A DNA stretch of 64,000 nucleotides from Ascidiella aspersa (GCA_963924565.1 OZ004615.1:7440001-7504000); one strand, 5' to 3'; numbered from the stretch's first letter, positions 14,090 to 64,000 are shown. The notes: a model not told the origin generated them from the letters alone. Translations and numbers: made by a program.

Positions 14090-14746
14090 ATGAGTCGCCA
14101 GAACAACTTGATGGCCGACCCAGCTGTCGAACCCCCCCGCTTCCTTCAATCCCTGCAAGGGGTCGTCGCCGTGGAGGGGGGTCAAGCCTGTTTTGAAGCC
14201 ATCATAACTGGTAGGGGTCCTATACTTGATCGATTTCTGTACTTTTTAAACAATATATTTGTAGACGAATTTTTAAGTAAAGATTTACAAAGAGTGGGTT
14301 TGAATGAATTATTTCTGGTAAGTTGAAAGTATTACGTCTGTGTGATAAGTTGCCACCACCTGTTAATTAAAAGTTTAAAAATACTGAAAACGCGTTTTGG
14401 TATGAGCCTACCGACAAATATAAGTAAAATATTTTTTTGGCAAAAAAATCGACGATTTACTGGGAAAGTTATTAATCGCAGATAACAAATACCTAAAACC
14501 TGGGTGTTGTTTCTCGCTCAACAAACGCAACACTTTGGTGCACAGGCTTCCCACGACCGGAAGTGCGCTGGTACCACGCCGGAAATGACGTCACTGAGTC
14601 GCACAACTACGAGACGAGTTACGCGGCCGACGGGCGCACTTGCCTGGTGATCGGCGAGGTGTTTGACGAGGACGCCGGACAGTTCACCTGCCAGGCGTAC
14701 AGCGAGCTGGGCCAGGCTTCCAGCACCGCAGAGCTGCTAGTGCAGA
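14090..14746 (+). CDS. TTN: Titin Ig Z1 (exons 14090-14210, 14546-14746)
   Basis: PPRFLQSLQGVVAVEGGQACFEAIITG|FPRPEVRWY...DAGQFTCQAYSELGQASSTAELLVQ; I-set Ig signature resembling human Z1. Confidence 0.93.
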
Positions 14747-17700
14747 GTGAGTGGGCTTATTCTGGGACGTTTTTTAAAGAGTTGGGCAGAACTTAACCAT
14801 TTACATATTACAAGAAACCGTTTGAGGTTGAATTTACGAACAGGATGCAGACCAAAGGTCGTGAGTTCGAACCTCACCCCAGGCTAGTTCTTTTTTTTAG
14901 TTTTCTTTAAAAGTACTGATTTTCTCCGGTTAAATGGCCAACCTGCGCATATTTTTCGTGAAAGTTTTTTTTTTCAATTTGATAGCAGGTGGGATATCCT
15001 GTGTCATTTTAGTCCATTTTTATTAATATACAATTTTGGAAAAACAAGATTACACCACACTGGCGTTTATTTGTGACTCGAATACCGCGTCATAAGGGCA
15101 TATGCCCTAGAGAAATAGTTCTGACTCGCAAGCTATAGATTCAATTATGGTTCATCAGTAATGAAGTGGTTTATCGATGTGCGTCTTTTATAACATACAG
15201 AGTAGGTCAGTAACGTAATATTCTATTTTAAATTTTAAACCTAGGATGTTTCACAATGGTGAACCCAAAGAGTAAAGACCGCTGCAGAACCGTGGTTTAC
15301 ATTCAGAGTTGTTTGCTGAAAATAAATTACTATTCGATATGAGTTAATTACAGGTTCAAATCTATGGGGTAAGCTGTGTTTTGGTTCGACCATACCAGCT
15401 GGATTTTCAAGCTGTAACGTTTGATACCACGTTTTGCTATTCGCACCCAACAAAACAAAACAACTGCTGTATTTACCACCTCAGATGGAGGCAAATGCGC
15501 ATTGCCACTTAGGCGAAACCAGTTGGACGTTACACCGTATTGCACACATGACATTATCTCCTTACTAACCGCCTTGTAATATTTTACAGCTTCCAGCAGC
15601 CCTCCGGACTTCACACTGCGACTTGCCAACGTCGAGGCAAGCCAGGGAGACTTGGTTCGCTTCCAAGTGCGTGCCAGCGGCGTTCCAACACCGCGAGTGA
15701 AGTGGTACCGTGAGGTAAGGACTTTGCGCGTGTGGAGTTGTCACTTTGCTGCGTTTGAACTGAGAGGCCCTATCCATATAACAGTGGCTTTAACACAGTG
15801 ATTCCTAAACTTTTTCGCCTCGTGGTCCCCGTGTTCTTCGGAATAAAAGGCCGACTGCTTCAATATTCAAAACATGAAAAAAAATTACAAACATCACTGT
15901 GCAATAAATAATATAGCATTAAGCACAGTATTCATAATGTTAATTTTTAGTATACAGTGGAATATAAAATAGTTTGTCCTTTTAATGTAATAAAAACGGC
16001 TACTGGCATCATTGTTGCGAAGTTTGCGCTATTTCAAAAGAACCTTCAGCGATAGTTTCGACGTGTGTTGCAATTTCAGCTTTTCGACGTGTGTTGCAAT
16101 TTCAGCGATAGTTTCAACGTGTGTTGCAGCCTGCACGTCTGTCTTTAAACCGGTTCAAATTTGAGCGTTCTAATATTTTCCTCATCATATTGGTTGCCGA
16201 ACATCGCAGACGTGGAATGTTTGTGAAACTGACTTTCTATCTGGTGGTTTTATATATAAATCTAAACTCCGTACCTAATCATTGCATTGGTCCGCGAAGG
16301 GAGCCGAAATCCGCAACTGCGCCGACTTCCAGATCCGATGCGAGGAGGGTCTGTACAGTCTGACGATCGCGGAGGCTTGTGAAGAGGACACTGGTCGCTT
16401 CACGGTGACCGCATCTAACCAGGGAGGCAAGGCCACCTCCACAGCCGTGTTGACAGTCTCAGGTAAGCTCTCCATCAGCCTCCTCCTTTTGCATTAAAAG
16501 CTTCCTACATATGATTTGATATAATTCTTTCGGACAATTTTCCTTAATTTAGCCTCACTGTGTAGCAGCTCTGTGCTGGCTACCAAAACCTTGGAACGCA
16601 AAAGACGGGTTTTCCTAAGAATTTTAATTAAAAATCACGAAAATAATATTCGACAAAATGGTAGTCACCACGGAAACTAAGTTAAAATGAAGGAAAATTG
16701 TCTTGGGCAGTTTTTGGATTATTCTAACAGTCATTTGTGATACAGACGACAGCACAGGTTGGAAAAATCTTTAGTGAAAATGAAGTTTACAAAAAAGTCG
16801 AAGCAACTTTGAATATAGAATTTTATTCGTTAAACGCTTAATTTGTATTATCGCCATTTAAAGGATGTAAACTTTTACTGTTGTATAATTAAATACATAT
16901 TTTTAAATTTGTTAAACAGTTTTTCTATTACCTTCATTTCTTAGCCAAAACAGGCAAAAATAATGATAGTTATGTTTTAGTACGTATCTATCAAAGCATT
17001 CAATGGTTTACATATATACAATTATTTTTCAGGTGAGGGAACTGTCACCGGCCAAGCCCGATCGGACTATGAACAAGAAACCGGATTATTAGCTCATCAA
17101 CTGATGACGTCGGACTCGGAAATGAAAGAAATGTCGGCGATCAAGCAATCGCGCGACTTCGAGATGCAGAGAAGTTCATTTGCCAAGGTGAGATATTTTT
17201 GTTCTTGACTCATTATTTCAATACAGTAATGCAGTAGTTCCCAACTTGGCTTGCGACACCTTACAGATGTTATAAATAGTTCGCGGCACCCTTGCTTGCA
17301 TTTTTACTGAGTGGTTCGCTGTAAGGTTACAGTAAACGAGACTGAAACAGCACATTAACTGCGCAACAAGGTTGAAAAAACCTTCTTAATTTTTGGCAAT
17401 TTTATCGTACACGAAAAATTGTATCAAGAAGCTCACCAATAGAGAAAAATAAAATCCTAAAGAATTTGAAATAGCTCTCGGCACCCGCTAAAAATGGCAC
17501 CCTAGAGTGCCGCGGCACCCCGGTTGAGAAACACTGTTATCATGGAATCAATTCTGTAAAATAATTACTTAATAAAATGTTGTGATGCACAGTTAGGTTG
17601 TGATTCTAAGAAACCAACTAATTCTGCCGTTGGTGTTTTTTTTACCACTGTTGTCATGGTGATATATATTAAGTGTGATGTCTTTGCAGTCATGGCAACA

Positions 17701-56700: not shown

Positions 56701-59700
56701 TGTGTGTATTTGACTATCCATTCGTCTCGATATAGTCAATGAAGTTGTTGTAATATACCTTTGCCTCCAACTGGGTAATAATCAACGTGTACACGAGTCT
56801 CCAGTTTTTACTATTTACCACAAACGAGTAAAAAACTAACAAAGAAAAAAAACAAGCACGTTTGCCGTTTGTCTGCTTGCAAACGCATGCATGAGGTTTG
56901 ACCTCGCAACAGGATTGAATTGCTTGGATTTAACGCACGTCGCCGCTTCGGTTTGCAAAGCATCCTTACAGCAAGGTACGTGGCATGTGTACTGGTCTGA
57001 TAGCATGTGTTTTAACACGCATTACGATATCAGTATAGTATCATAATTAGTGTAAATTTGTCATATGTCATACATGTACATTTAAATAAGCTCACTCGCT
57101 AACCACGATTCCATTCTTTCCCCGCGCAGAAAAATCAAAACTGGACGAAACCGGCAAACAGTATTTGAGCCACGTTGAAATGCAGCTGTACAGCAATCCC
57201 AGCAGCTACGAGCTGAGTTTACCAATCGACGACGTCACAACCGAGTTTTCGCCCATGATAGCCGAGCCTCTGCGGGCCTTGGCGGCCATGGTGGGCCAGG
57301 AGGCGCGGTTCCAGGTGCGCCTGGCCGCCCTGCCGGCGCCCGAGATCGTCTGGTACAAGGACGGCAAGCCGCTGAAGGGTCTTGGACCGGGTTTGGACGG
57401 GCCCAAGTACCGATTCTACTTTCAGACTCGCGCGCACAGTCACACGCGCGGCGTCCTAATCGCGCCAGTGGCGCCCGAGGACGCCGGGGTGTACGAGGTG
57501 CGCGCCTGGAACAGACTTGGAACCGTGACTTGCAGCGCCGTGCTGTCTGTCAAAGGTAATTTGACAAAGAGGCCGGCCGTTAGTGCTGCTGCTGCTGCTG
57601 TTGGTTTGACTGTGGCGAATGGGACTCGACGATTGGGTTAACAAAAAACTGCTCCGATGCCAAATTAATTATTCGATTTTTATTAACCTAAAGGTGTAAA
57701 TCGAGTTGTGTCGATATTTTTGTAAATTAAACACCCTATTGCCTCAGTTGTAATTTGCCCTCGATTCAATCCAATTAGAAAGAAAATGATAAATAATAAT
57801 CGTCTGTTCATAATGGTACGATTGCTTCGCCTCTGTAAATGCTGTAATCTAAATAAATACTTTACGCACGCTGACGTTTGTTTTTCTTCCCCCATCATCC
57901 TCCCCTCTCCTCGTCACTTCGCTGTTCTCATCATCACAAACACACAATCTTATATATTATATTTATCCACATCCATGCCATGCTTTCTCCACGTCCCCCC
58001 AACTGATTGTTTCTCGGCACGCCTGTGTCCGTAACTGATGTGTGCGCCCGCTATTGCTTTCGATCCAATAAATCGATGCGCGCACAAAAAACGACCTGGT
58101 AAATTTTAACATCAAAAAAATAAATAAACGACAGACGTAGCGGCCAGCCAAACGCAGAGCACGGAAAGCGACAGCGACGGTAGCGCCCAGCGACGCGAAA
58201 TTGCGCGGCTCGAGCACGAAGTTGCGCCCGCGGCGCGCCACATCAGTCACGTGACAACGCGCCTCGCCAAACCCACCCCAACCCCGTCAGAAAAGTCATC
58301 AGATCACGTAGGTCCTCTCCGTGGGGAGGAGGACGCGACTTCTCCTCCGAAAGAGGCGATCCGCGGACTCTCGATTCGGTTTGTTCCCGAAGTGAAGCCG
58401 AGCGTGCAGAAGCAAGCAGGACAACAGCCTCGAACGGAATCGACCGTGGCCTTAAAGAAGCGGGTCTCGTTTTCGGCCGATCACGATTACGTTCTTATCT
58501 CGCCCGCATCCACTCCCCTGACGCCGTACAGCGACGAGGACGAAGACACGTTCACCGAAACGTCGGAGGACGAGTTTCAGTTCGAGCCGCCGATGGCCAC
58601 CAGCGAGTTCTACGTGGACCGTGGCCGCGACCTCGAGTGGGAAGCGAGAAGCGGTCAGGAGAGTCCGTCCTCGCACACCAGAGGACTCAGCATGCTACAG
58701 ATGCAGGTGAAGGGAGTCGAGAGGCAGATGCCGACCGTCGACGTCTTAGTGAAATGCAAAGGGGCTGAAGCGACAGAATCAGCAGTACCCCCATCACCGG
58801 ACGTTGGATTACAACGGAGTTACTCGCGTCAGATGAAGGTAGATTTGTCGAGGCCCGAAAGCCCGCGCTCGCCGAAGCCCAAAGTCCAAACCGTTACAAG
58901 CAAGACAAGCCAGACCCTTTCAAAACTAAAGGAAGTGACCCCGGGCGATAAAAGGCAAACCTCTCGCGCCGAGATAAGTGTCGACGAGAGAAGGGAATTT
59001 CCTGACTTTACGGCGGTCGTGGCGAAACCAAAGGCAGCGGTCTCCCCTCAGGTCGACAGCAGATCTCCCGAGCGTAGAGCGAAGCAAACCGCAGAGGCGG
59101 GAACCTTGGCTTACGCGCGGACGGCTAACGGTCAAGTACAGACAGAGGCTAGGAGGTCCAGCGGATCCTCACAGACCTCTTCCACCACCGAGAGCAAAGA
59201 AAGCTCCACGGACGAAGGGGTTGTGGCCAGAACCCAGACCCCGACCTTGCGTACTAAAGCCGCCGACTCGCAGACGCAATTTCAGGCGTACGGCGCCACG
59301 CAGACGCGGTATAGGCGTGCCGGCGACCAAGAGAAATTAGTGCCAGTACCGGAAATACGTGGATTCGACGCCGCGACTGTAACAGAGCCGGAGCAAGCGA
59401 CAAAACGCTCACACACTGAAATAAACACCGGAGCGCAAAAAGTCGTCGCTGTATCTAAGCCTATGCAGCGTACTTCCGCGCCCAAATCGCCAGTCCAGAG
59501 GTCGACCATTGCAGGAACCCAGACGGTATCAGGAATCGAAACCGCGTCGGGAGGAAGCCAGACCTTTCCTCAAACCAGGTCCAGCACAAGTCAGGCTCGC
59601 CTGGAAACGAGAACCACAGAGACATCTGTGGAAACCAGAGATTCTTCCGTCCGGACGCAAACCCCGGAGAGAAGAACCTCCGCGTCCGAAACTCAGACAC

Positions 59701-62700
59701 AGTTCAAGTCCTACCAAGGCACGCAGACCGAGAAACGCCGCTCATCCGGCGAGAAGACAATGCAAACGGACTTTTCCTCCACAAAGATTTCGCAGACGGA
59801 GCGCGAGTCGCAAAGAGCCCCGCCGAAAATGCACGTAGCCACTGTGAAGCCCATACAGATGGAACGACCCAAGTCGGTCAAGGGAAAGGAAACGTCCTTC
59901 ATCGCCACGACCGAGACGCAGACCTTCACACAGAAAAGGTCCGGTTCTGTGCAAACCACGCCGCGAATAAGCACAAGGACAACCTCGACGGAATCGATCG
60001 GTTCTTCAAACGAAACCCAAACTCCGAGCCGGTCTTCCTCGGTGATGGAGACTCAAACCCACGAGATGAGCTACAGAGAAACGCAGACCGACCATCGTCC
60101 AGGCACAGACGCAAAAATGCTTCAGACCGATTTTTCCTCAACCGCCGAATCTCAAACGATCTATCAGCGCCCGTCTGGGATGGCATCCGAAACTCAGACC
60201 GCCTCTGTGCAAAGCAAAGGCATTGGAACAGATCAAAAGGCGACCAAACAGCGTCAAATTCATGTGGCAACCGTGGTAACGCGTACCATAGACGACAGCG
60301 CCCAGACCGAGAGTAGACTTGACTCACACAGCGTACAGACCGGCTCGGATGTAAGTTCGGTTGAGTCGCAAGCCAACGTAGGCCGACGAAGCTTCTCGAC
60401 TCAAGCGGCGCCGCGTTCGGCGACCAGCGAGACTTCAACCGAAATGCGAAGCGTTACGACTCGAACCCAAACCGCCAAGAAAACCACCGGCGCCGTAGAA
60501 ACCCAGACGCAAGCAAAGAGGTACGGTTCATCGCAAACTGATGCCGCGCCGTCGCGAGATACAGAAGCGGTGCAAACTGATTTCGCGGCCACCAAGACTT
60601 CGCAAACTGCGACATCCAAGTCTGTGGGCCGCGATTCGGAGACGCAAACCAAGCAGCTCCGGTCGAAAAGCTCCTGGACCGAAGAAGATGCGTCTCCGGT
60701 TGCGGCGCCGATGCGCGAAGAAGTATTTGCTGAGCCCGAAGCGGCACCGGAAAAGATCATGAGCCACACGGCCAATGTTGTAGCCGTTCCTGTTCACAAC
60801 ATCGCCAGTAGTAAAAATCTGGATCCGGTTTCAGTGGTTTTGCCTATTTTGGATGAAACCACGAGCGACGGACGACGGACCCGGAAACCGACCGTTCACC
60901 TTTCCCACGCCAAAGCAGTGGCGGTTAAAGAGGAAACGAGATTTGAAAAGGCCGTACAGAGCCCGCCGCTCGCGAGAAAGCGTGTCGGAAAACCTACAGA
61001 CAAATCGAAATCGACAAAGACAAAGCCGACAACGGTGGTGTCAGAAACTGAAACCGACTCCAGGATTGCTCCAGCTCCACGCATACGACAAGAGCCTACT
61101 ACAGAGCAACAGTTGGCACCCACTGCGGAAATCGCTCAGGCGATGCGACAGGGTATCAAAACCATCAGCGATGAGCAGACTCCGACACAAAGAGTTGCGC
61201 AGATTCAGGTGACCCAAGTTACCAAGAAGACCTCGACAAGGAAGGACGGTGGCGCCGTGCACTCTGTTTCGGAGACGATCGCCTCCCAGCAAGTGTGGAA
61301 CCCGATTACTCGAGAATTCCAGGAGGTCTCCATGGAGCAGAGCCAGGTGTCCGGTCCTGGAAAGGTTCAAATCAAAGCCTCGTCTGAAGAGGAACCGGTC
61401 AAAGAAAAGCCTTCGAAACGAGGTGATGTGATTGTGCACCCGATCCAGTCTGTCGGTGACGCAGTTCAACCTACACAAGTAAAGAAAACAGAGGAAACGG
61501 AAGAAGACGTGATTCGACCCACGGTGCAACCTGGTGTTTCACCGAAACTAAAAGTTAAACAAACAATGGCGGAAAAAGCGAGGTCGTTGCGGTCTCTAAC
61601 AGACCAAATGGCAAAAGACCAAACGCAAACATCCAAGCGGGAGATTCTTAAACCCAAGGACACGGTTTCGGAACCCCCTATTCAACCCACTTCAAAAGAT
61701 CGGGATACCTTGAAAGATGTTGATATTACTTTGGATAATCTTTCCGATGCTATTGTAGAGGTTGCTAAACCTACACCGGTCGTTGCCACACCAGTCGCTC
61801 AACCTATCGCACCTAAACCGATAGAAACGCAACCGAAAATCGAGGTTACTGAACAAAAGGGTGATGTACTCGAAGAGAAAGGCGCTGAACCAGCGAAACC
61901 CGTTACAAAGCCATTGGAAAAGAGTGAAACAAAGAAAACTAAACGTGTTTGGAACTCGCGCACACGCCAGTTTGACGAGGTGGAAATCGAAATCTCCGTT
62001 ACTCAAAAACAAGAAAATATTAAATCTGCTAAAGCGAGTCCAAAGACCACACAGGTAACCTCAGAAGAAAGTGTTACTAAATTAGCCTCAAAGCAAGTGA
62101 CCGAGACTGAAACGGTACCGAAAGTGGAACCACAGGTTGATTCACTGTCACTTAAAACACACGAACAATCCGAGGTGGTTGTTGAACAGAGGATTGGAAT
62201 GACAAAACGATCTCCGACCGCCAAGGAAATGACGACAGCCCTGGCTTCTCTAACCGACAATATGTCGAGAGACGAAAAAGAAGTGCCACCAAAACGTACT
62301 CCCGTTATTCCCGGGGCAGAAAAGGTTACCGAAGAAGCTGTGCAGCCTAAAGACAGACGAGAGGCCAGTGTCGATGTTGAGGTTGATGACCTGCCTCCGA
62401 AAGAGGTATCCCTCGATCAAAAGCAAACTACTAGAAAGGTGTCTGCGCAAACATCAACCACCGTGACCACTCAGGAAATTAAAACGACCAAACGTGTTTG
62501 GAATCCAAAGACCCGGCAATTCGACGAGGTTGCAATCGAAAAGTCGACCAAAACAACTTCGGACACCAAACAGAAACCAAAGAGTGTCACAGAGATTAAG
62601 GAAATCAAATCTGACGAATCACGTTTACAGGAATTACACGACGCTACAGCCTTAACGCAAACTGTAGACGAAGTTAGTGTGGAGACATCGTTCACTGACA

Positions 62701-64000
62701 CTCCGTCTCAACCTAAAGAGTTGGAGAAGTCAAAATCGCAAATCGATATTAAGCATTCAACGCCAGAAGTAAAACTAGAACCGGAAACAAAGCATAATAT
62801 TCACGTTGAAACGTCTAAACCGGTCAGTGTTTCAACTAAATCTGAAACAGAAACGGTGCCATCTGCTGAACCGAAACAAAAATCTGACGAAGAGAAGCCA
62901 CGAATGACGTGGAATTCTAAAACGCGGCAATTCGAGGAGGTACTTTCCGTTGTTAAAGTTCCAACGTCGAAGGCCACCGCTCAGGAACCTGCCAAAGTAG
63001 ACATTCCAACGGTCGAGGAACCAAAACCAGCCGTGACCAAGCCGCATGCTGAACCAGAGACTGCATTCCAGAAGGTTCCGGTTGCGACCGAACCGCAAAC
63101 TGCTTTAACCGGGGACGAATATGTTCAGCCCGTGTTTCGGGATGTTAAAACCGGGAAGGTAGACAAACAGGACGTGGAAAAAATACCGATTAAGACGTCG
63201 GGCAAGTCTAAAGAATTAACACTGTTTTTAACTGACGCGTTAGTGGTTGATCAACCACAACAGGGAAAAGTTAAACAATCTGAACCCTCCCAAGCTCTTA
63301 AAGTTGCCGAAGAGCCGATTTATAAAAAGGATAGGGAGACGGTTGCAACTAGCATTGATGCACCTACTTCACCAGAGCAAACAATTCCAGCCGCTGTTTC
63401 CAAAAGCGTTAAAATTGGGGAAGTTGCAACTATTGAAGTAAAAGAAACTCATGAAAGGATATCTGGTGATGCTTTATCGCAAGAAGAAAAGAAAACCAAG
63501 AGGGTTTGGAATCCTAAAACGCGACGCTTCGATGAAGTTATAGTTGAAATCTCAACAACAACAAAAACTCAAGATTCTAAACCGAAAAAGACAGCAAAGC
63601 CTTCCCCAGCGAAAACCGAAGAAATAGCTCCAGAAACAACCAAAGCACCAAAAACTGATATTCAAGTAAAAGTGACCGAAATGCCAGAAACTGATACAAG
63701 TGTTCAGACTGAATTGGTATCGTCAACAAAACCTGGTGACGAGGAGATTATACATCCTATTACTTTGGGTGTAAAACCTACGAAAACAAAGGCCATTTAT
63801 AAAACATCCGCTGTGGAATCACTTACCGATGCAATGTCTATAAAGGGCATTCAACCGGAACCAGTTTCATTGCCAAGCGGTGTTGCTGTTACAGAAGATT
63901 TAGTTCAGCCAAAAGATAAAGATTCTGTTGATATTTCTGTCCCATATGAACCTACACCACCCGAGGAAATCCCGGTCGGTAAGTCCCGCGAAGACATTAA
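14090..64000 (+). CDS. TTN: Titin/connectin, N-terminal part (Z-disk to proximal I-band); 52 coding exons in the window; gene continues beyond it
   Basis: The spliced translation starts MSRQNNLMADPAVEPPRFLQSLQGVVAVEGGQACFEAIITGFPRPEVRW (Z1-like). It follows human titin domain by domain, including non-Ig landmarks: RQSPSPIRS, IPPW, SPSRRLDD..EKFFKPKF, AWYTATAVNK.GRD.TRCKVNVE, DLYD..KMQKP, EFG, EDMRSVL, IRKTKDDLAHWSK and I1 WFYPEDKVCEM.IRD. All junction phases are consistent. Confidence 0.96.
14841..14898 (+). other. tRNA-derived fragment (3' half only; tRNA pseudogene or SINE head)
   Basis: Perfect T-arm GTGAG-TTCGAAC-CTCAC (B-box) at 14861-14877 followed by a T run. No D-arm or acceptor stem was found. 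Confidence 0.4.
15590..16462 (+). CDS. TTN: Titin Ig Z2 (exons 15590-15714, 16300-16462)
   Basis: PPDFTLRLANVEASQGDLVRFQVRASGVPTPRVKWYRE|GAEIRNCADFQIRCEEGLYSLTIAEACEEDTGRFTVTASNQGGKATSTAVLTVSG; very close to human Z2. Confidence 0.93.
16045..16128. repeat. Short imperfect tandem repeat, about 3 copies of TTTCGACGTGTGTTGCAATTTCAGC
   Basis: Read directly from the sequence. Confidence 0.75.
17033..20534 (+). CDS. TTN: Titin Z-disk unique insertion (exons 17033-17187, 17747-17878, 18192-18341, 18876-19403, 20424-20534)
   Basis: In-frame exons with canonical splice sites. They include RRQSPSPIRSVRMSPP and IPPW, matching the vertebrate SP-rich Z insertion. The last small exon is the least certain. 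Confidence 0.8.
17232..17536. mobile_element. hAT/Charlie-like MITE
   Basis: CAGTAGTTCCCAAC...GGTTGAGAAACACTG with internal GGCACCC motifs; TSD degenerate. Confidence 0.55.
18388..18448. repeat. Tandem repeat, 3 copies of ~21 bp (TATATTGGTCACGCTTGATTG)
   Basis: Read directly from the sequence. Confidence 0.85.
20246..20285 (-). ncRNA. Minimal type I hammerhead ribozyme motif (intact core, weakened stem I)
   Basis: Minus strand reads ACA-CUGAUGA-U-GGCA-UGAGGUAU-UGCC-GAAA-CG-UU/UAU. Confidence 0.5.
21094..23607 (+). CDS. TTN: Titin Ig Z3, linker and Ig Z4 (exons 21094-21223, 21704-21858, 22234-22331, 22591-22991, 23494-23607)
   Basis: Z3: LQCEVMGNPVPSVTWFRDG...DFEMTYNGRVSCLLIRE...DAGEFTCSATNAQG. 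Z4: KLVEGGSVQLDCVISGIPPPRVTWAKNG...LVITMVFVEDVGEYTITATN. Confidence 0.9.
23181..23224 (+). ncRNA. Minimal hammerhead-like motif, G8A variant (probably impaired)
   Basis: UGCC-CUGAUAA-A-GAU..CCU.GUAU.AGG..AUC-GAAA-CG-UC/GGUA. A similar motif lies at 30817-30860. Confidence 0.45.
23959..25136 (+). CDS. TTN: Titin SP/SPxR-rich linker (exons 23959-24085, 24951-25136; the intron between them is GC-AG)
   Basis: ...ISRSPVRVASPSRRLDDLDQLDIEKFFK corresponds to human ...SPGRRLEETDESQLERLYK. The donor is CCAG|GCAAGT at 24085. Confidence 0.82.
24453..24867 (+). mobile_element. Diverged copy of the same hAT MITE family
   Basis: GTGTTGTAA...AAGTCCCAGTCCAAGTCA...ATTACAACACTG. A further fragment lies near 18075-18150. 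Confidence 0.7.
25390..36178 (+). CDS. TTN: Titin Ig Z6-Z9 equivalents (exons 25390-25502, 31048-31212, 31826-31994, 32480-32717, 33286-33435, 33791-33902, 34478-34632, 35076-35266, 35913-36178)
   Basis: Segments PKFLKKP..CNEGQATRIDCKVTGRP; HRVVVKEDGIRSLIISPA; PDIVWLKD; AHFECHIVPIGDP..VEWLLDGKPLEYANR; IVLQPDPIRVQEGDPARFRCRV; SKRFRVWCDGIHY. All recognisably match the human Z-disk Ig series. Confidence 0.92.
25645..25931. repeat. Diverged direct duplication, ~100-bp unit with ~187-bp period
   Basis: ATAGGCATTT...GTATCCCAAACAAACG.TACA.CCCCTGCCAC..TACTACACCTG occurs twice. Confidence 0.7.
28047..28345. repeat. Diverged tandem duplication, ~154-bp period
   Basis: TCTGGCCTATGT..AG..GTA.GTTAAACGGT.GGTAAAAT.GTAAAAC...AAAT(T)GCATTTAT occurs twice. 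Confidence 0.7.
29710..30447 (+). CDS. Hypothetical 245-aa ORF nested in the largest titin intron (nested gene or alternative first exon)
   Basis: The frame is open from 29560 to 30447 with ATG at 29710 (MEEILNTTKGEQQLPCWRLEPEY...). Codon usage is exon-like and GC3-rich inside an otherwise AT-rich intron. No domain was recognised. Confidence 0.45.
   Translation: MEEILNTTKGEQQLPCWRLEPEYIVNSLPLPSKYDEPVAVSTDSDSGYRRSFSSDDRPFTEPETPSTTHSAEMNSAELIKRAADQLASLSPALIRDRLTQQPVLKTSLGIGMSIESSTAEPKLTRPPKIKEAALRYTGINSLKDLRSYMSRKRALKSDATVQPLPATADAKLSPPISKSLKNGGGVEKSRFGRVAEVGVSPWLKADLHIYVCVCSKGKFPSSVCLRSTCERHCYRRVPARSVFLR
34243..34391. mobile_element. Palindromic Penelope-like remnant carrying a hammerhead motif
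   Basis: Imperfect inverted arms of about 65 bp. Combined consensus TTAA-CTGATGA-T-GATRC-AAGCTC-GYATC-GAAACGTC-TTAA. A related copy lies at about 50-135. Confidence 0.6.
36654..38553 (+). CDS. TTN: Titin Z/I junction linker and Ig I1 (exons 36654-36817, 37353-37505, 38163-38348, 38436-38553)
   Basis: Linker EELQSKF and YEVFIRKTKDDLAHWSK, then EAPIVLERLYNQTANEGEDARFRVRF..WFYPE|DKVCEMYIRD...NIAGQAGSQGFLLVQ (I1-like). The donor at 37505 is weak. Confidence 0.88.
39077..50213 (+). CDS. TTN: Proximal I-band tandem Ig segment, 11 domains (exons 39077-39385, 39613-39743, 39918-40053, 40477-40618, 41141-41265, 41682-42079, 42597-42732, 43152-43418, 43904-44170, 45465-45607, 46055-46306, 46859-46994, 47575-47850, 48349-48496, 50089-50213)
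   Basis: Repeated ~90-aa Ig units with W-x-K-D/N-G, H-x-L and D-x-G-x-Y-x-F-x-x-G motifs; splice phases consistent. Confidence 0.9.
40079..40350. mobile_element. hAT/Charlie-like MITE
   Basis: CAGGGGTTCTTGAACT...AGTTTAAGAACCTCTG; TSD AGTTATAG/AGCTATAG (7 of 8). Confidence 0.75.
40994..41032 (-). ncRNA. Minimal type I hammerhead ribozyme motif with an intact core
   Basis: Minus strand reads GAGA-CUGAUGA-U-GCCA-UAUUUUG-UGGC-GAAA-UA-UA/UUUC: 4-bp stem I, 4-bp stem II, palindromic AUAU stem III. Confidence 0.6.
50872..53948 (+). CDS. TTN: Two Ig domains equivalent to the last constitutive proximal I-band Igs of vertebrate titin (exons 50872-51012, 52391-52534, 52835-52960, 53760-53948)
   Basis: PEAPKFVQEL..GRPTPKITWYRE..FKYKLLHDEDQYTL; EGQSARFQCKIAGT..RIKPSRYFK..QLEVTEAYPEDEGEY. 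These closely resemble the human domains preceding the novex/N2B exons. Confidence 0.9.
53359..53680. mobile_element. hAT/Charlie-like MITE
   Basis: CAGTGCTTCCAAACC...GGTTGGGAAGCACTG with subterminal GGGTCGC; TSD CTTTAAAA/CTTTAAAC (7 of 8). Confidence 0.78.
55327..57555 (+). CDS. TTN: Two further Ig domains, probably alternatively spliced (exons 55327-55475 with 55992-56127; and 57130-57555)
   Basis: EPPRVIEPLQPAHVIEGSAVKLEC..DSGEIRCHASNFAG; SPMIAEPLRALAAMVGQEARFQV..WYKDG..EDAGVYEVRAWNRLG. Both units are phase 1 to phase 1. Confidence 0.8.
58135..63978 (+). CDS. TTN: Giant titin exon (~1948 codons): unique region with an xQT array, then a PEVK-like T/E/K/P/V-rich region
   Basis: Phase-1 acceptor at 58134. 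The frame with codons starting at 58137 has no stop to the window end (it is absent from the ORF track, which lists only closed ORFs). A phase-1 donor G|GTAAGT at 63978 is a candidate end, but the exon may run further. Confidence 0.8.

Follow-up and report, generated by a model that had tools for sequence, protein, structure and literature searches.

The stretch of the Ascidiella aspersa genome considered here (GCA_963924565.1 OZ004615.1:7440001-7504000; 64,000 nucleotides, hereafter the window) carries the first part of a titin gene, in which a single giant exon encodes a dense array of glutamine-threonine (QT) motifs. A first-pass annotation of the window had likened these motifs to those bound by the dimeric hub protein LC8 (DYNLL), and the present analysis examines the array, its host exon and the candidate partner. 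Coordinates are counted from the first base of the window, and all features within it lie on the plus strand.

The frame that contains the array runs without stops from 58128 to 71021 (4,297 codons) when the window is read together with the following 10 kb of contig (L002). Within this frame, an acceptor reading cag|AC (58133-58134), read directly, sets the first base of the giant exon at 58135, and a strong donor, A|GTGAGT, sets its last at 70866 (L002:6866), giving an exon that occupies 58135..64000 in the window and measures 12,732 nt or 4,244 codons in all. The exon upstream (57240..57555) encodes an immunoglobulin (Ig) domain of the I-set type (Pfam I-set, E 9e-15) whose best solved-structure matches are to titin; its donor, AAAG|gtaatt at 57555, was likewise read directly, and its final G joins the AC that opens the giant exon to form an Asp codon across the junction. 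The giant exon is entered and left in phase 1, making it a symmetric cassette whose inclusion or skipping would leave the reading frame intact. Together, the intact frame of 4,244 codons and the phase-matched splice sites argue strongly that the exon is coding. An I-set Ig domain closes it (Pfam I-set, E 2e-13), and no Pfam family matched its first 1,957 residues. Over its whole length the exon has an AT skew of +0.3, which favours codons for T, Q, S, R, E and K.

Two further features of the giant exon flank the array. At 58500-58620, near PYSDEDEDTFTETSEDEFQFE and directly upstream of the array, lies an acidic cluster of Ser/Thr-Pro and Asp/Glu residues that resembles, in its sequence, a phospho-acidic patch of the casein-kinase type. 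From 61296 to the end of the window, and on to about 70350 in the following contig sequence, at least 16 W-N-P-x-T-R-x-F-x-E motifs punctuate super-repeats of about 200 residues; this region is rich in Pro, Glu, Val and Lys and occupies most of the exon.

The host gene is, on the evidence of its domains, a real titin, and the setting assumed by the first-pass annotation, a giant exon of titin, holds: Z1/Z2-like Ig exons precede the splice-bounded exon, and Ig/FN3 exons and a kinase follow it. These exons were searched individually rather than as a joined, spliced protein. Coding sequence begins at about 14.06-14.8 kb with exons similar to the N-terminal part of titin, and one of them (14497-14793) matches both titin Z1Z2 (1ya5, E 7e-23) and the I65-70 Ig segment of the titin I-band (3b43, E 7e-32). 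Some 15-18 Ig domains, estimated by eye, follow on the plus strand, many of them as I-set exons. Further downstream, a 10-kb sample on the same strand (L014, C9:7594001-7604000) is a single open frame, the first 1,000 residues of which hold seven fn3 and three I-set domains; exons of the A-band type, with their Ig/FN3 repeats, are thus enormous here. The regulatory tail of the titin kinase is matched at L015:174-650 (6ygn, E 3e-23; 1tki, E 6e-17), again on the same strand, and its position about 174 kb from the start of the window implies a gene span of roughly 170 kb. A search of the genome for Pfam Titin_Z found no match, in a run whose positive controls were equally silent.

The QT array itself occupies 59130..60650, and its 507 stop-free codons encode 29 QT dipeptides: 14 as TQT, seven as SQT, four as VQT and one each as MQT, LQT, AQT and PQT. 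The count given in the first-pass annotation (29 xQT, comprising 14 TQT and 15 others) proves exact on translation, and every peptide quoted there is present, including DTSVQTE near 63700. ETQT makes up nine of the 14 TQT motifs, and [ST]Q sites, also 29 in the 507 residues, form a dense S/T-Q cluster. Such numbers must be judged against a composition that is itself unusual (Thr 18.5%, Ser 14.8%, Gln 10.1%), and chance expectations were accordingly drawn from 20,000 residue shuffles of the array's own composition. These shuffles contained 9.5 +/- 2.6 QT (maximum 20) and 1.76 +/- 1.28 TQT (maximum 8), against the 29 and 14 observed. TQT is the most over-represented tripeptide of the array (z 9.6), followed by ETQ (8 against 0.66 expected) and QTD (5 against 0.34). 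The motifs are also regularly placed, with 20 of the 28 QT-to-QT intervals measuring 10-14 residues where random placement gives 4.2 +/- 1.9 (maximum 12). Elsewhere in the giant exon QT density falls to near zero, with about a dozen QT in some 3,450 residues. The chain is predicted to be disordered: AlphaFold2 run on the single sequence returned a mean predicted local distance difference test (pLDDT) score of 39 and no secondary structure, no Pfam domain matched within the array, and the composition is dominated by Ser, Thr and Gln.

Underlying this regularity, the array is evidently composed of four old super-repeats of 120-150 residues with five to six QT motifs each, the first being reduced. 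The first motifs of consecutive super-repeats stand 141, 120 and 150 residues apart. All four units were delimited by MAFFT alignment and a repeat profile. R1 (59193..59615; profile E 1.5e-16) retains its first three QT motifs and has lost motifs 4 and 5; R2 (59616..59975) has QT at residues 510, 522, 532, 545 and 555 of the open reading frame, R3 (59976..60425) at residues 630, 642, 652, 665, 675 and 689, and R4 (60426..60662) at residues 780, 792, 802, 815, 825 and 839. Relative to the first motif of each super-repeat, the others therefore stand at +12, +22, +35 and +45, with an extra one at +59 in R3 and R4, and the successive spacings of 12, 10, 13 and 10 residues are exactly kept. Each position also has its own character: motif 1 reads [R/E]TQT[P/A], motif 2 [E/D][T/S]QT[Q/H], motif 3 Y-x-x-[T/S]QT, motif 4 [M/L/V]QTDF and motif 5 SQT. 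Between the motif blocks lie spacers of 30-70 residues.

In the tail of each super-repeat a hydrophobic patch, VVAV or HVATV, recurs (59442-59453, 59835-59846, 60264-60275 and 60777-60788), which may represent a second linear motif; the second of these patches is the only part of the array around which pLDDT exceeds 50. The patches often precede K/S-P.

The super-repeats are not the product of recent slippage or duplication, an origin ruled out because Tandem Repeats Finder detected no repeat in the DNA of the array. Relatives of the region are equally hard to find. An HMMER search with exon residues 1-1190 against 1.84 billion representative proteins returned no match, not even to itself, from a library that may lack the lineage altogether, and the ESM Atlas yielded no usable match. 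When the array and the repeat profile were run against the 308-Mb genome, this locus alone was matched, the profile finding just the four copies.

The four paralogous super-repeats can nevertheless serve as an internal substitute for orthologues. Their nucleotide identity is 42-54%, and at the third positions of conserved Q and T codons synonymous change is near saturation, with 20 of 30 pairwise comparisons differing (tallied by hand with a codon table). R2 to R4 align over 64 columns without a gap, which leaves the aligner no freedom to create QT matches. Across this alignment all 30 pairwise comparisons of Q and T columns show identity, against 47 of 147 (32%) for the other columns. One of the conditions set in the first-pass annotation was that QT positions be conserved above the residues that flank them; among these internal repeats they are, with ten of ten QT columns invariant in R2-R4 against 11 of the remaining 54 (Fisher p 2e-6). 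Near-saturated synonymous change alongside invariant QT implies that the motifs are under selection, and the alignment thus indicates that QT positions have been maintained while the remaining sequence drifted. Invariance extends to a few positions beyond QT, namely the Tyr at -4 of motif 3, present in all four repeats, and the Asp-Phe that follows motif 4, with the hydrophobic patch recurring at the close of each unit.

LC8 is the most likely reader of such motifs: each of the two grooves of its dimer would accept one extended strand of eight residues anchored on [T/S/V]-Q-T. How well the array conforms to this preference was judged against the 79 binders used to train LC8Pred and 32 published non-binders (PMC6607443 Table S4), using as a filter the residues found at -4, -3, -2, -1 and +2 among the 79 binders, tallied by hand. 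An LC8 motif is expected to have a T/V/I/S-Q-T anchor with a polar residue at -4, a large one at -3, nothing bulky and aromatic at -2 and, by preference, P, D or E at +2. By the filter, 13 of the 29 motifs use only residues seen among the binders, five depart mildly at a single position and 11 contravene a rule outright. The description of all 29 as LC8-type in the first-pass annotation is thus an overcount, since 11 run against published rules, among them one with the core KMLQTD of a known non-binder; 13 are compatible with LC8 and five nearly so. The motif nearest to published binders, SSNETQTP (60003..60026), lies within the binder residue sets at every position and resembles TSNETQTA of ATMIN and YSKETQTP of the dynein intermediate chain (PMC6607443 Table S4); GAVETQTQ nearly copies another ATMIN site, SSVETQTS. 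A realistic estimate from these sequences would be roughly 8-18 usable LC8 sites among the 29, a number that remains comparable to the 11 of ASCIZ and the 15 of KANK1. In KANK1, moreover, non-canonical motifs that do not bind individually bind LC8 cooperatively in an array.

The animal possesses the partner. A canonical, intronless LC8 gene of 90 codons lies on another contig (C7, L005:1498-1767, minus strand), its product matching Pfam Dynein_light (E 1e-39) and human DYNLL1 (E 6e-51). At least one further, spliced LC8-like copy is found on contig C1 (L006:1465-1713, plus strand), with four weaker Dynein_light matches elsewhere. Complex prediction with two LC8 chains and two copies of one 44-residue segment of R2 gave an interface score (ipSAE) of 0.75 in each of three runs, whereas the controls scored 0.29, 0.14 and 0.01. 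Among solved complexes 51 of 78 attain the mark used, and among mismatched pairs two of 108, a calibration that is only rough for a multi-copy peptide job. In all three runs partner residues 6-14 (RDSSVRTQT) faced LC8 residues 35-44 and 60-71, so that the motif SSVRTQTP (59643..59666) comes to lie within the LC8 groove; the pLDDT of the partner was 46 or higher, and run-to-run contact agreement at least 2%. In silico, then, one motif of the array is predicted to dock where LC8 partners do, in the groove formed along the dimer interface.

Several considerations weigh against LC8 as the reader of the array. Firstly, the motifs fit imperfectly. Of the 11 that break the rules, four have M, L, A or P as anchor, none of which occurs before QT among published binders (PMC6607443 Table S4), and the other seven place V, I or Y at -4, a position at which no LC8 binder carries a hydrophobic residue larger than Ala. 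The array core KMLQTD is identical to that of the published non-binder PLK1 (IQKMLQTD), and AQT is also the anchor of the non-binder IRS1 (VDTAAQTN) (PMC6607443). The conserved Tyr of motif 3 stands at the disfavoured -4, which means that part at least of the conservation is unexplained by LC8. Secondly, the filter is weak, as about half of the 32 published non-binders pass it too (hand tally), and Ser/Thr-rich TQT peptides such as those of mucin are often non-binders (PMC6607443). Thirdly, linkers between eight-residue motifs spaced 10-14 residues apart are two to six residues long, and the shortest of them, the two-residue linker of a 10-residue spacing, is below any that has been studied, so that neighbouring sites may exclude each other. 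Finally, the high docking score may reflect memory of solved LC8-TQT complexes; the predictor is uncalibrated for peptides and disordered chains, in one run or more the fold confidence of the partner did not reach 50, and the model covers a single segment.

Placed beside known systems, the array combines features of several. ASCIZ/ATMIN, whose LC8-binding domain has 11 sites in human and seven in Drosophila, shares with it a long disordered domain that is S/T-Q-rich and holds many TQT, mostly as ETQT, and several of its 8-mers are near-identical to those of the array. There is no sequence homology between the two, however, and ASCIZ, a transcription factor, has linkers of uneven length (3 to 41 residues) and mostly low occupancy, whereas the spacing of the array is short and regular and its host is a sarcomeric spring. 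In Drosophila ASCIZ, linkers of three residues give stable duplexes and those of six to nine residues homogeneous complexes. In Nup159, the DID region stacks five dimers of the LC8 protein Dyn2 on linkers of four to five residues, and its consecutive QT motifs on short linkers, which build a rod of stacked beads whose role is structural, recall those of the array; it differs in being a nucleoporin with five sites, as opposed to four super-repeats of five to six motifs with 30-70-residue spacers. By analogy, the closest precedent for a structural linker whose length and stiffness are set by LC8 would be the L2 linker of KANK1, where 15 LC8 dimers on linkers of three to four residues make a rod of about 53 nm. 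This linker is likewise disordered, several hundred residues long and densely furnished with sites, and LC8 turns it into KANK1's rigid paired rod, but its sites are individually weak and mostly non-TQT; the array has more canonical TQT, and binding was measured in KANK1 and is predicted here. The linkers of the array match those of the rod-forming clients Nup159 (4-5), KANK1 (3-4) and Drosophila ASCIZ (3-9), in line with the comparison to ladder-forming arrays drawn in the first-pass annotation. On the side of the host, the unique sequences of the vertebrate titin I-band (N2B-us, novex, PEVK) are also large, disordered, alternatively includable and placed after the proximal tandem-Ig segment, a description that the phase 1-1 cassette fits; they show no detectable sequence similarity to the array. 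Among the papers searched, none links titin or titin-like proteins with LC8.

Taken as a whole, the evidence makes the array a candidate multivalent client of LC8 in an unprecedented host, the best available explanation and one whose chances we regard as evenly balanced, and it would cover perhaps half of the motifs. What the analysis shows is that the QT motifs are in excess, periodic and conserved, that the chain is predicted to be disordered, that the genome encodes a canonical LC8 and that one motif docks in silico; the binding itself we infer. In the half-sarcomere neighbouring titins share direction and register, and LC8, whose dimers bind two parallel strands, one per groove, would need just this arrangement to build a duplex. 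Several LC8 dimers on matching motifs of two neighbouring titins could then form a bead-on-string duplex, the anchors 10-14 residues apart packing the beads tightly, and some 500 residues of entropic coil would become a stiffer, pre-extended and paired rod in which four blocks of beads, separated by hinges of 30-70 residues, pair two titins. The stoichiometry of such a complex, the pairing and any mechanical effect have no firmer standing, and to the LC8-tunable spring or titin cross-link suggested in the first-pass annotation we give that of conjecture. In its fullest form, this scheme would make the array the largest LC8 ladder yet seen, with four hinged blocks of five to six sites of which perhaps 15-20 are occupied, and the level of LC8 or phosphorylation of the motifs would set the slack length and stiffness of a spring segment of the I-band as well as pairing neighbouring titins, making it a molecular spring tuned by a hub protein; so complete a picture we consider unlikely.

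The Tyr, the Asp-Phe and the hydrophobic patches are left unexplained by LC8, making a second reader or a composite function possible. Taken further, this would mean that the QT positions are kept for something other than LC8, with E-T-Q-T, S-Y-x-x-T-Q-T and x-Q-T-D-F acting as composite sites for a sarcomeric ligand or a kinase, an alternative that is tenable if doubtful. Its appeal lies in the invariant columns that exceed the needs of LC8 (the motif-3 Tyr, Asp-Phe and the VVAV/HVATV patch), in the retention at motif 4 of a hydrophobic M, L or V before QT when M and L anchors are absent among LC8 binders, and in the abundance of [ST]Q sites already described. Yet the dipeptide that stays constant is Q-T as opposed to [ST]-Q, with T, S, M, L or V in front of it, and the LC8 dock beat its controls. 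LC8 apart, we know of nothing that reads x-Q-T as a strand motif, and S/T-Q kinases of the phosphatidylinositol 3-kinase-related type are nuclear DNA-damage enzymes, unlikely partners for a sarcomeric spring. One specific candidate, a reading of TQTD as the FHA ligand pT-x-x-D, was ruled out since the Thr before Q is missing in four of the five QTD motifs.

Alternatively, LC8 may bind without building a stiff duplex, the array instead being a docking or buffering platform that concentrates LC8, or clients bridged by it, at the I-band. All of the evidence for LC8 binding applies equally here, and the comparable ETQT-rich array of ASCIZ acts as a concentration sensor of mostly low occupancy; against this, short uniform linkers accompany rigid, fully occupied rods in KANK1, and a platform strikes us as improbable. 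Least probable of all is that the motifs have no specific reader, having arisen incidentally when a short unit rich in Thr and Gln was duplicated in a coding strand poor in T and rich in A, with QT retained by descent or for the intrinsic elasticity or solubility of the spring: the AT skew, the common ancestry of the repeats in which the motifs sit and the homologue search, which came back empty from a library that may lack the lineage and gives no sign of long-term retention, all lean that way, but composition accounts for only one in three or so of the QT and one in eight of the TQT, and ten QT columns are invariant, with their 12, 10, 13, 10 spacing, in repeats that are 32% identical outside the motifs and near-saturated in synonymous change.

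Splicing, phosphorylation, oxidation and the binding of chaperones or Ca2+ are the means by which the elasticity of titin is understood to be adjusted. Whether LC8 should be added to this list can be approached with a compact test object, as one 65-residue repeat with five motifs and the animal's own 90-residue LC8 suffice for isothermal titration calorimetry, size-exclusion chromatography with multi-angle light scattering, electron microscopy and single-molecule pulling. Should LC8 fail to bind, the strictly conserved QT periodicity would still mark a functional motif new to titin. Should the array indeed be an LC8 client of the kind envisaged, a ubiquitous dimeric hub that zips and stiffens a disordered spring would constitute a new kind of titin control, and the principle recently recognised in KANK1, by which LC8 converts a disordered linker into a rod, would reach a load-bearing protein of muscle.

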